Origin: Oikopleura dioica
Lineage: Eukaryota > Animalia > Chordata
Direction of reading: 5' to 3'
NCBI GenBank assembly: GCA_907165135.1
Contig: OU015566.1
Span: forward strand, 4,402,001 to 4,466,000
Length of the DNA: 64,000 bases
Part shown: in pieces, positions 18,890-43,040 of the stretch
Layout of the letters: each line of letters opens with the position of its first letter
How positions within the stretch are numbered: the stretch's first letter is position 1
Position numbers and translations under genes: made by a program
Notes under the pieces: model-generated
What the model saw: the letters and a program-made list of their open reading frames with translations, nothing else
What the model was told of the DNA's origin: nothing
Databases searched by the model: none

Positions 18890-19131
18890 ATAAAGAAAAA
18901 TTCCTGTAATGAAAGTTTGATATTTGTTGATTTATTTAAATGCAGGGACATGTAAAACAGCTGAACGGAGTTTCTCAGTCCACTCATTTTTCATGAGGTT
19001 TGAAAGTCGGTAATTCGTTGATTCTGACGGTAACTCGCTAAATCTCAAGTATGGAAAGGCAAAACCTTCATTGAGAAAAAAGAGAAGAAGAAACTTGAAA
19101 TCGATCGGACTCATGAAAATTTTTCGATTTT

Positions 19132-21736
19132 TTATTTATTTTTTCTTTTTATAGAAAAAAGCCTTTTTGCAAAGAACAACGGAAAAGCCAGCATCAAAAC
19201 TTGCACAGCGATGAAAAAATAGAAAACAGCGATAAATCCTTCTTTTCCAAATTTTTTCGAAATTTCTTGAAAGCCAAAAGTGGACAAGCTTTTGAGATTT
19301 TAAGATATTTTGTTCGCAAATAAAAAAAACCTGGTGATTCCAAGAATAAGTCGTTTGATGCCAATCAGGAAGCCATAGTACTTTTCGTCGAAAAGAAATC
19401 TGCAGATAACAGGAGCGAGCGCGAATACCCACGCATCGAAAATTCGCAGCAAGAAAATTATCGACAGAAGATTTTCTTCAGTGAAAGAAAGCTTTAACGG
19501 AGTTATGAGCCGGATGTAATGATATCAATGTTATGAAAATAATTTTTAAGTGTTATCTTGTTGAACTCTAGCTGAAGAATATTCATTGTGATTCCAACAA
19601 TAAGATTTAAAATCACGAAAATCAGACACCCAAGAAGTTTGCCAAAATGAGCAGGTCTAGATTTAATGCATTTTCCGAGAGCATCAGAGATACATCCACA
19701 TGGCAGCGTGAAAAATGCCGCTGTCCAAGCGAAATTGCCAAAGTCGTCAACATGTTTTTGGTAGGAATCTTTGGCGACGAGTCTTGTGTAAGCGTTCCAG
19801 GTCATGACGCAAAAGAGCAGGTTGAAATTTGCTTGGACGATCCAAACAACAAGGAGGATATAATTTATATCAGAGCACTGTTTTCTTATATCCTTAAGGG
19901 GGTAGATGTCAAGAATCGGACTTCCTGTCAGTGTTTTTTCAAATTTTTAACATAATGACACCCTTATTTTTTTTTTTGCTTAAAATTTATTTCAGGCAAT
20001 TATCTCTTTCCTATGGAAGCCAAAAATTGAGATTTTTTAGCTTTCGAGGTGCTACAATGGAAACCGGGCACCTTCGATTGCCGGCAAAATGACCACTTTA
20101 GGAAAAAAAGCGATCTTTGACGAAAAATTTTGTGAAAAATTTTTTTGAAATTCAAAATTTCGGCTTTCAAACCAGGGTTCGGTATTTTGAATTCGTCGAA
20201 AAATTCGCCAATACACGCAGCGAATATGCTCTTTTCTTAAGCGAATGAGCGATTGTTCGCGAATCGCCTATTCGGGCGAATATTCGCTCGAAATTGAGCG
20301 TACAGCCCTGGATTGGCTGAACTCCAGGGCCGCGGGTGAGAAAAGGGTGGCGCCCGCGAGCTATAAGGTTATTTAGGCGGTGAAGATAAAATTATAGGCT
20401 GCGCAACGTCAAAGCCCGACCAATCAGAGCGCGCGGCAAAGCGAATGTTTGAGAAATTCGCTGAATTTCTGAAAAATTCTCCGAGAAAATTCGTTTTCAT
20501 TCGCTTTGAATATTCGCTCATTAGAGAATATTCGTAAACGAATAAATAGAAAATTCAAATGAAAAACGAATAATTTCGCGAATTCAAAATACCGAACCCT
20601 GTTTCAAACGAAAAAGAAAAAGGTCCAAAGTTTTTGTTTCCGTAGTAAAATAACTTATTTTAAATAAGGGTGTCACTATTTTAACTTTGGGAAAAAAGTC
20701 TGACGGAAAATGGCGATTCTTGATATCTACCCCCTTAAACTTGATCTTTTCTTTCTCGATCAAATATTCTCTGTGCACTTCGCTCCAAGTGGACATTCTT
20801 CGCTTGTTGATCCTTGTGTCCTTCTTCTTAATTCTCCCAACCGTCTGCCCGACAATGCTCCTGGAAAAACTCGAAACGTCGCTCTTAAATCTGATGACAG
20901 GGAAGAGAAAAAATGTTCGCAGCCAAACTGGAATCGTCCAAAAGATATTTATAAGGATAACCCAATTGTAGGCAAGGCCATTTTTGAAGAGAGTCGCTAA
21001 AACGCGAAAATACGACCATCCAGCGAGGTAGAAAAACTCGACGAAACTCATCACGAAAGCGCTGATATTCGGGAACAAAACAGACATGAGCGAGTTTGTG
21101 AGGACGAATGAGTAGGTTCCACTAGAATATAGAAAGGTTGCTACGTTTTCGGCTCGAAAAATCTGGTTAAAAATCAACTCTATTAAAAATTTAACTAATC
21201 ATTAAACAAATTTTTTAAATAAATTTTATAAATCAATTATTATTTATTATCAATATTATTGAAATAATAAAATATAATTAATTTAAAAAATATTTTAAAA
21301 ATTTAAAAAATTTTTTCGGCCGTTTCTAGAAAAATCAGCCAGTTGGCTTGCGGCGTGAATAGAAAACACAAGAGTCCAATAGTCACTGCAATGGTGAGTG
21401 CTACTCTTGCCATAAACACCCCATATTTTTCAATCATCACTCCAACAAAAATAACACAAATGCTGTTCGAGAAGGTGCCGATGATCCCAGCCAGAGAAAA
21501 AAGGCTATCGCGCTCTTCGCAATTGATGATCTCATTTGTCATTGTCGTCGAGTTCGAAAGCGTGTCACAAGAAGATTCAAAGACTTTGAGCGATTTCAAG
21601 ATTTCAACAAGATTTGGCCATCCTAAAAAAATGGTTAGTTTTGTTGGCGAAAGGTGGACTCACCGTAAATAGTTCCGAAAAAGGCAAAGCCTTCAATGGG
21701 CAAAGTAAAAATGAGCAAATAATTTGAAAGAGTCAT
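19132..21736 (-). CDS. SLC43A: MFS transporter of the SLC43 (LAT3/LAT4/SLC43A3) family
   Basis: GFAFFGTIYGWPNLVEILKSLKVFESSC, multiple TM helices, FGVMIEKYG motif A-like region, and C-terminal YYGFLIG. The frame runs through the TTAA-element insertion once it is spliced out. Confidence 0.75.
19898..20734. mobile_element. Kolobok-like MITE (837 bp) inserted in SLC43 coding sequence and forming an intron
   Basis: TTAA|GGGGGTAGATGTCAAGAATCG ... CGATTCTTGATATCTACCCCC|TTAA with about 75-bp imperfect TIRs. The empty site restores K-F-K-D-I-R-K-Q-C. Confidence 0.9.
20173..20601. mobile_element. hAT-type MITE nested in the Kolobok-like MITE
   Basis: Perfect 8-bp TSD TTTCAAAC (20165-20172 and 20602-20609), 23-bp TIR CAGGGTTCGGTATTTTGAATTCG, and many CGAAT/ATTCG subterminal motifs. 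Confidence 0.93.
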
Positions 21737-22179
21737 TCTCTGATACTATTTGATTCAAATGCTGTGTCTACTCGCGATTAAATAGGTCACATAGAATCGA
21801 TGATGCTCATTATCACGACCGAGACTTTGACTTTCACACCTTTGATCATCGTTTTTAGAGAGGTCACAATAAAATAGTTATTAAAGATCATTTTCTATCA
21901 TTCTGTGGTTATCAAAAAAAGCTTACTAGCACTTTTTCTTGCAACCCTGGCGGGAAGCAATAAATAGAAAATTGATGGTCACTCCTGCTGACTAAAAAAC
22001 CTGCTGATTACCCCGTTTTGGTACAAAAATGATGCTTCTTCCGATATCAAGAATCTCCAAAATCTGTCTTTTCTGTTCATTTTCAAAAGATTTGTAAGAA
22101 TCAAAATTCTATTTGAAGAAAAATTGACGAATAAGGCAAATAAGTGGCGCGAAGCAAATTACTCCGAAAATTACTAAAA

Positions 22180-42584: not shown

Positions 42585-43012
42585 CAACCATAACAAAAAA
42601 AGAATGTCTGTACAGAATATTTTCTTTGAATGCTTTACTCGTTGACTGTGCATGAATAAATACAGTGATTGAACAATCGAGAGGTCGAAAAATTGTTTGC
42701 GAAAAATTTCTCTTATCATCAATAATTGTTTACAAATACGGTATCTTCGGTAAACTAAGGTGTTCTATTTGCATCATTTTCTTCTCTCAACCGCTTTTTT
42801 CCCAACGAAAAAGTGAAAAATGAAACTTTCAAGTGTTCTTTTTCCCTTCACTTCTCTTTGTCTAGCGGGGAACCAGCTGGTCCACGAGAAAAAACATCGT
42901 GTCAGGACTTTAAGATAGAGAAGAATGTCGACTACCAAGGCATCTTTTGATTATATGGAAAAATCAAACTGTTAATTAAAAATCTCAAATAATGAGTTTT
43001 CAATAAATTTAA

Positions 43013-43040
43013 GGGAGTAGATATCAAGAATCGGATTTAC
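43013..43040. repeat. Solo left TIR of the Kolobok-like family found in SLC43
   Basis: TTAA|GGGAGTAGATATCAAGAATCGGA; no right end found. Confidence 0.6.

Follow-up and report, generated by a model that had tools for sequence, protein, structure and literature searches.

A nested transposon insertion in a coding exon of an SLC43A3-like transporter gene of Oikopleura dioica and its possible removal as a new intron

The DNA analysed here is a stretch of 64,000 nucleotides from Oikopleura dioica (assembly GCA_907165135.1, contig OU015566.1, positions 4,402,001 to 4,466,000 of the forward strand), referred to below as the window and numbered from its first letter. On its minus strand lies a gene predicted to encode a transporter similar to human SLC43A3/ENBT1, one coding exon of which is interrupted by a transposon. 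The whole insertion, including both TTAA copies that flank it, occupies 19894–20738. It consists of a non-autonomous TTAA-type element, a miniature inverted-repeat transposable element (MITE), which in turn contains a younger hAT-type MITE. There was no intron at this site before the insertion, and all exons of the gene are still open. The reading that we favour, tentatively and with a confidence a little short of even, is that the transporter gene still works and that the whole 0.84-kb insert is removed as a new intron by way of a GT donor within the transposon, giving KFK-G-DIR in the protein. Productive removal of the element by whatever donor seems somewhat more probable than its opposite; about two-thirds of this expectation falls to the canonical GT, which adds a glycine, and most of the rest to a GG donor.

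The outer element and its borders are composed as follows (target-site duplication, TSD; terminal inverted repeat, TIR).

19898–20734, unstranded: outer non-autonomous TTAA-type (Kolobok-like) MITE, 837 bp with the nested element
19894–19897, unstranded: TTAA TSD, low-coordinate copy; on the minus strand its last A and the flanking G (19893) form the candidate acceptor AG
20735–20738, unstranded: TTAA TSD, high-coordinate copy, within the upstream-exon codons TTT-AAG
19898–19918, plus strand: TIR GGGGGTAGATGTCAAGAATCG; in minus-strand reading it gives the branch-point-like CTTGAC (A at 19909), the pyrimidine run ATCTACCCCC and TTAAG
20714–20734, minus strand: TIR GGGGGTAGATATCAAGAATCG, read on the minus strand; contains both candidate donors

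Together with their TTAA copies the two arms (19894–19918 and 20714–20738) are 25 nt long and 96% complementary, and the repeat finder detected weaker subterminal complementarity out to about 76 nt. The symmetric solution places the element from GGGGGTAGAT to ATCTACCCCC between the TTAA copies. Its ends are GGGGG...CCCCC in the window copy and GGGGG...CCTCC in the family consensus. Subtraction of the nested element and of one copy of its 8-bp duplication leaves 400 bp, which align end to end with copies of about 384 bp found on all large contigs (80–86% identity). Twenty-nine other copies were listed; about 23 of them have TTAA on both sides, and the others mostly show a one-base variant of TTAA on one side. 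The pattern of outer TIR plus TTAA occurs 121 times in the genome, the reversed control not at all.

The model of the host gene was checked exon by exon from frame and homology. It comprises six coding exons on the minus strand with 479 codons plus stop, zero internal stops and workable splice sites.

21664–21736, minus strand: exon 1 (ATG at 21736–34), followed by a 41-nt GT-AG intron
21327–21622, minus strand: exon 2, matching the N-terminal part of human ENBT1/SLC43A3
20734–21162, minus strand: exon 3, 143 codons, with ...EKEKIKFK as its last residues before the insertion
19569–19892, minus strand: exon 4, 108 codons, starting DIRKQCSD
19331–19491, minus strand: exon 5
19132–19288, minus strand: exon 6, with the stop codon at 19134–32

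Exon 2 matches the structure of human ENBT1/SLC43A3 (PDB 9l38_A) with E = 8e-6, and a metagenomic member of the family, P0011, matches ENBT1 with E = 1.7e-16 and LAT4 with E = 6e-8. The Pfam MFS_1 matches of the host gene are weak. Its model is 479 amino acids long as against 491 in the ENBT1 chain. By similarity, and by a major facilitator superfamily fold with a long central loop, the product is predicted to be an SLC43A3/ENBT1-like transporter. Alignments place the insertion site in the long, length-variable cytoplasmic loop between transmembrane helices 6 and 7, which connects the two six-helix halves. Exon 4, downstream of the insertion, has kept every one of the 28 invariant positions at which nine family members agree; its single private change is conservative, and in this respect it is no worse than its relatives. 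The genome contains at least four paralogous loci (G000:C5:4442908-4443480, C5:4450255-4451495, C1:993912-995693 and C4:8561181-8561796), and two of these lie 7 kb apart on C5. As the relatives in the databases are nearly all short open reading frames (ORFs) from metagenomes, this family appears to be divergent and specific to larvaceans. No Rfam match at E ≤ 0.1 was obtained over 19000–22000, and no match to the phage collection was found.

The state of the site before the insertion is preserved in a relative. A word search with exon 3 led to P0001, a continuous ORF of 230 amino acids on an ENA metagenome contig, which is 71–80% identical to the window gene and closer to it than to any paralog in the genome. 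P0001 runs uninterrupted through the insertion site (KFKDVRKQCSD; ...EKEKVKFKDVRKQCSDINY...; ...NIEKEKVKFKDVRKQCSDINYILMVVWIV...), and the four paralogous loci are likewise continuous ORFs across it. Exact excision of the element together with one TTAA leaves no extra nucleotide and results in an open frame of 284 codons (153 + 131), which matches the ortholog-like P0001 straight across the site. The continuity of P0001 and the four paralogs, and the open frame joined by exact excision, indicate that no earlier intron existed here. The first-pass annotation of this DNA had postulated K-F-K-D-I-R as the ancestral sequence; a reading without glycine, K-F-K-D-[I/V]-R, is indeed seen in P0001.

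At the interrupted codons both ends of a possible intron are at hand. In minus-strand reading the upstream exon ends ...GAA AAG ATC AAG TTT AAG and is followed by GGG GTA GAT ATC, the codons being AAG (20742–40), TTT (20739–37), AAG (20736–34) and GGG (20733–31), then GT (20730–29). The far end reads ...GACATCTACCCCCTTAAG and then GAT ATA AGA AAA CAG, where GAT (19892–90) would start the next exon. The following candidate sites result, with a slash marking the exon–intron border.

20729–20730, minus strand: candidate canonical donor GT, phase 0 (GGG/GTAGAT); its use would leave an extra GGG codon (Gly)
20732–20733, minus strand: alternative non-canonical donor GG (AAG/GGGGGT); its use would be scarless
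19893–19894, minus strand: candidate acceptor AG (CCCCCTTAAG/GAT), its A being the last base of the TSD and its G the flanking base

Removal from the GT (20730–29) to the AG (19894–93) would take out 838 nt and leave three additional nucleotides, that is, one glycine. From the GG (20733–32) to the same AG, 841 nt would be removed without a scar. The latter removal is exact, because a G follows the second TTAA and a G also starts the element, so that TTAAG is the effective repeat. The first-pass annotation had proposed a phase-0 GT in TTT AAG GGG/GTAGAT with a product enlarged by glycine; the GT and its phase were confirmed at the codon level, and the predicted gain of one codon follows from them. 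Its statement that a GG donor would restore the frame exactly is arithmetically correct. CTTGAC is located 16 nt upstream of the candidate AG and is followed by ATCTACCCCCTT. TTAAG provides the first AG after CTTGAC and the pyrimidine run.

The other introns of the host gene offer a standard of comparison. Introns 1 and 5 are GT-AG, and the GT donors of the gene are no better than GTAGAT, being as weak as GTTCAA-like sites or GTTTTT. Two of the four other acceptors also end in AAG. The introns at 21163–21326 (164 nt, before exon 3) and 19492–19568, both on the minus strand, have no usable in-frame GT. These introns, 2 and 4, appear to use CTA/GA donors and would thus be of the GA-AG type. The models with such donors are uncertain, since the conserved upstream AG reported for introns of this type (PMC7072748) is missing.

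From these data the following course of events may be proposed. A TTAA-targeting non-autonomous DNA transposon would have landed at the TTAA within codons TTT-AAG of a still undivided exon 3/4, and a young hAT-type MITE would later have inserted into it. In the present gene one inverted repeat would supply the donor GGG/GTAGAT, the mirror repeat at the opposite end the branch-point-like CTTGAC and the pyrimidine run, and the second TTAA copy with its flanking G the acceptor AG. With canonical GT use the product would gain one glycine.

The second insertion is represented by three features.

20173–20601, unstranded: nested hAT-type MITE, 429 bp, bounded by the TIR CAGGGTTCGGTATTTTGAATTCG and its complement
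20165–20172, unstranded: 8-bp duplication of the nested element, TTTCAAAC on the plus strand
20602–20609, unstranded: second copy of this 8-bp duplication

The TIRs of the nested element are CAGGGTTCGG...CCGAACCCTG and its duplication is perfect (GTTTGAAA on the minus strand); the perfect TSD and the hAT type ascribed to it by the first-pass annotation are thus supported, with CAGGG...CCCTG as ends. When it is excised, the outer element aligns with other copies of its family without a gap. Short TIRs starting with YARNG are a hallmark of hAT transposons. All copies of this MITE family start CAGGG and end CCCTG, and 10 of the 11 full copies are flanked by perfect 8-bp duplications, all of them different, as is typical of hAT. 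The family is young, with eight full copies at 98–99% identity and two at 93–94%, besides split or partial copies. A GC-rich core with a CCAAT-like motif is present in the nested copy, which differs from the family consensus by six substitutions and one indel in 428 nt (about 1.4%); the outer copy diverges by 8.6% from the consensus of its own family. Since nesting and consensus divergence agree, the outer insertion came first and the hAT insertion is the younger one, as had been claimed.

Nine matches to Dimer_Tnp_hAT were found in the genome. A 5.7-kb element (L068, G000:C1:6715705-6721644) has the ends of the hAT MITE (the first 250 bp and the last 189 bp). Pfam gave no match to the ORFs inside it, the longest of 314 amino acids, and the element may be composite or contain another insertion.

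One argument that the gene still functions relies on time. The outer insertion is at least as old at this site as the hAT insertion, and the hAT copy has since changed by about 1%. A dead coding sequence of 1.4 kb would probably have acquired a frameshift or a stop in this period, which on a rough estimate is perhaps worth a several-fold likelihood ratio in favour of splicing. The tolerance of O. dioica for non-GT-AG introns, about 11% of the total (PMC8008620), also speaks for removal, as do its place among the species with intron gains by transposon insertion (PMC3443670, citing Denoeud 2010), the open exons and the invariant residues retained in exon 4.

A considerable number of observations weigh against removal of the insert as a GT-AG intron. 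The donor GTAGAT lacks a G at position +5. An intron of 838 nt would be very long: in the Okinawa assembly OKI2018_I69 (64.3 Mbp, 19 scaffolds, GC content about 41%) the median intron measures 49 bp (PMC8008620). Both candidate splice sites lie inside a stable predicted stem. In the predicted RNA the two TIR pairs form nested hairpins (minimum free energy −297.7 kcal/mol, z = −11 against shuffled sequences) and the candidate donor and acceptor face each other at the base of the stem, an arrangement that could either join the ends of an unusually long intron or hide the splice sites. Two ORFs from metagenomes were all that the word search with exon 3 brought up; it yielded neither a transcript nor an annotated protein spanning the junction. 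An exhaustive search of representatives with P0001 gave 39 matches, nearly all of them short fragments and none a full-length Oikopleura model, and a scan of metagenome contigs with P0001 gave no match. Of 30 copies of the outer family examined, the window copy alone is located in a long ORF, and the family is therefore not specialised for splicing. Nor can the 8.6% divergence of the outer copy date its stay at this site, because the closest pair in the family is 2.9% apart with different flanks, and old copies thus moved late. The family was mobile fairly recently, until about 1.5% divergence ago, and dating of the insertion by divergence was rejected as decisive.

A further counter-example is another copy of the hAT MITE. 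It is 98% identical and lies inside an exon of a gene with multiple CUB domains (Pfam CUB, E = 2.8e-115) at position 1501–1928 of locus L037 (G000:C2:10718405-10718832). It is flanked by 236 open codons in one direction and by more than 500 in the other; its 8-bp TSD is ATTCAATC. No obvious in-frame GT-AG pair was seen around this copy, which could represent a fresh null allele or be spliced at unusual sites. With its intact flanks and no obvious rescue, it indicates that recent gene-breaking insertions do occur in the assembly. As its exon also has intact flanking ORFs, such ORFs alone prove little at the transporter locus.

These observations lead to the most serious competing explanation, that the insertion simply breaks the gene. 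The window would then carry a recent null or segregating allele, expressed as half a transporter or degraded by nonsense-mediated decay, and the paralogs would allow its loss to be tolerated. Read-through translation (ORF 20584–21177) would stop inside the element after 48 transposon codons, and the paralogous loci, at least four in number, could make up for a lost gene. The late mobility of the outer family, the unrescued copy in the CUB-domain exon and the lack of a transcript across the junction in the database searches with exon 3 and P0001 agree with this explanation. Set against it are the open state of all exons and the intact conserved residues downstream, though the insert predates a hAT copy that has gathered six substitutions and one indel; the in-frame GT...AG with branch point and pyrimidine tract at hand; and the length-variable loop, in which one extra residue should be harmless. 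Weighing both sides, we regard a broken gene as only slightly less likely than the favoured reading.

Splicing might also proceed without a scar from the non-canonical donor GG (AAG/GGGGGT...CTTAAG/GAT), which would restore K-F-K-D-I-R. Apart from the exactness of the 841-nt removal that results from the effective repeat TTAAG, the sequence AAG/GGGGGT fits the donor consensus at positions −2, −1, +1, +5 and +6. About 11% of the introns in the assembly are non-canonical (PMC8008620), GA-AG introns are unusually common in O. dioica (PMC7072748), and GA donors seem to be required by two further introns of this gene, in which an in-frame GT is missing. Yet a canonical GT in the same frame is available only 3 nt downstream, GG-AG introns of Oikopleura are not documented in the literature searched, and the models with GA donors, without the upstream AG typical of GA-AG introns (PMC7072748), are themselves uncertain. 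Use of the GG donor is in our view decidedly unlikely.

Still less probable is processing of another kind, by cryptic sites in the exon or the element, by skipping of exon sequence or by transcription of each half of the transporter on its own. In its favour, donors in O. dioica are degenerate, and the nested MITE has the GC-rich core with the CCAAT-like motif. Against this, no second in-frame combination of sites was found close to the junctions that keeps the residues of P0001, and TTAAG is the first AG past CTTGAC and the pyrimidine run. An older intron at this position, into which the transposon landed, was rejected and has practically no probability, given that excision of the element and one TTAA leaves no extra nucleotide and joins the frame on residues matching P0001, that P0001 and the four paralogous loci are continuous, and that no point in its favour was found.

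Regarding the class of the outer element, Kolobok transposons generate TTAA duplications and have 5′-RR...YY-3′ termini, unlike piggyBac (PMC9587614). The outer element shares the 4-bp TTAA duplication on both sides and, with GG..CC ends, the termini; it differs in that no transposase-encoding partner was found. A genome search for a relative with the same TIRs and a transposase gave only non-coding forms of about 384 and about 656 bp, so the name Kolobok depends on the ends of the element. Of the ‘Kolobok-like insertion’ described by the first-pass annotation, the TTAA duplication and the GG..CC ends were found where it had placed them, while the label itself is taken from the ends only; it is a fair structural label, no more. 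The ends of piggyBac elements are CC..GG. A piggyBac origin of the outer element was rejected by its GG..CC termini and by two loci with the piggyBac-type transposase domain PF13843 (G000:C1:539284-540003 and C5:1088671-1089363), neither of which has a TIR of the MITE within 1.5 kb; one of them contains two stops and the other is open.

Two further candidates for an autonomous partner were dismissed. An 8-kb block with one end near a TIR is 99% identical on two chromosomes (L065 and L057, G000:C1:~1350513-1358640; L066 and L064, G000:C5:~10817590-10826170). In it are tandem repeats of roughly 110 bp and an ORF of 188 amino acids without Pfam match. The similarity of the two copies runs on past the embedded TIR of the MITE family, so the block is a duplicated segment or a larger element of unknown kind. 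Unpaired matches to the outer TIR resolved into the 656-bp subfamily or parts of this 8-kb block.

Other relatives of the outer element were noted. The second non-coding subfamily, of about 656 bp (L053–L063, e.g. G000:C1:4357131-4357790), shares the GGAGGTAGATATCAAGAATCG terminus and has GGAGGT[A/C]GATATCAAGAAAAA at its other end. The window has a further terminus of the family of the outer MITE at 43009–43033 (TTAAGGGAGTAGATATCAAGAATCG), for which no partner TIR was detected in the window at up to three mismatches. On the left flanks of four loci (L011, L012, L013 and L030), copies of the outer family adjoin the apparent end of another copy (...CTACCCCC TTAA), which suggests insertion into a TTAA beside a resident copy. 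One locus (L067) has a GGGGGTGGTGGTCAAG-type end, and its TIR family is at least partly different from that of the outer MITE.

The significance of the locus depends on splicing. If the GT-AG removal that we favour, or its scarless variant, takes place, this would be a cleanly dated birth of a chordate intron by transposon insertion with known ancestral empty state. Its cost would be defined (one glycine or none), and the second insertion would show how a new intron grows. It would also provide a natural side-by-side test of the choice between GT and GG donors in a species rich in non-canonical introns. Clean splicing would raise the interest of the locus, above all if other copies at TTAAG sites behave alike. 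Unless splicing is confirmed, it is one well-described exon insertion among several in the genome.

A more general proposal would regard the TTAA-type MITE family as a latent introner. The two ends are mirror images, and either orientation thus offers G/GTAGAT at one end and CTTGAY-pyrimidine-TTAA at the other. Exon insertions at TTAAG might then be spliced in any codon phase with three additional nucleotides, or with none by way of GG. If this were true, a permissive O. dioica spliceosome would turn exon hits into introns that grow by nested insertions, and the locus would show the birth of an animal intron in progress. We consider this proposal unlikely.

Introners, the best-known intron-generating system, are DNA transposons reportedly described as such by Huff and co-workers in 2016 and by Gozashti and co-workers in 2022. 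In Micromonas, Aureococcus and many other eukaryotes one splice site lies within the element and the other derives from the duplicated target (review PMC11282704; PMC12130899). The present locus is built alike: its DNA transposon is short and non-autonomous and has TIRs and a TSD, and of the candidate splice sites one lies inside the element and the other is composed of the duplicated target and a flanking base. In contrast to introners, which exist in hundreds of mostly genic and spliced copies, only 1 of the 30 copies examined is located in a long ORF, and the intron is a candidate predicted from the DNA. Moreover, its predicted canonical product is not scarless, having three additional nucleotides. 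The locus would work like an introner, yet its family does not show the many spliced genic copies of introners; it is a candidate case.

Closer in phylogeny is Fritillaria borealis, whose MITE-derived introns are said to have been described by Henriet and co-workers in 2019. These introns are non-canonical, and a permissive spliceosome has been proposed to neutralise the insertions, according to PMC11282704 and PMC13326754. They resemble the present case in that they belong to the same animal class, are based on transposons, have TIRs and TSDs at their borders and occupy lineage-specific positions. They differ in being mostly AG-AC or AG-AT and distributed genome-wide, whereas here a single O. 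dioica locus has candidate GT-AG or GG-AG borders. Transposon-derived introns have thus already been reported for larvaceans, and the kind of event is not new. O. dioica itself is among the species tabulated with intron gains by transposon insertion, in PMC3443670, citing Denoeud 2010. Those gains and the present locus share the species complex and the proposed mechanism, the locus described here coming from the Okinawa lineage.

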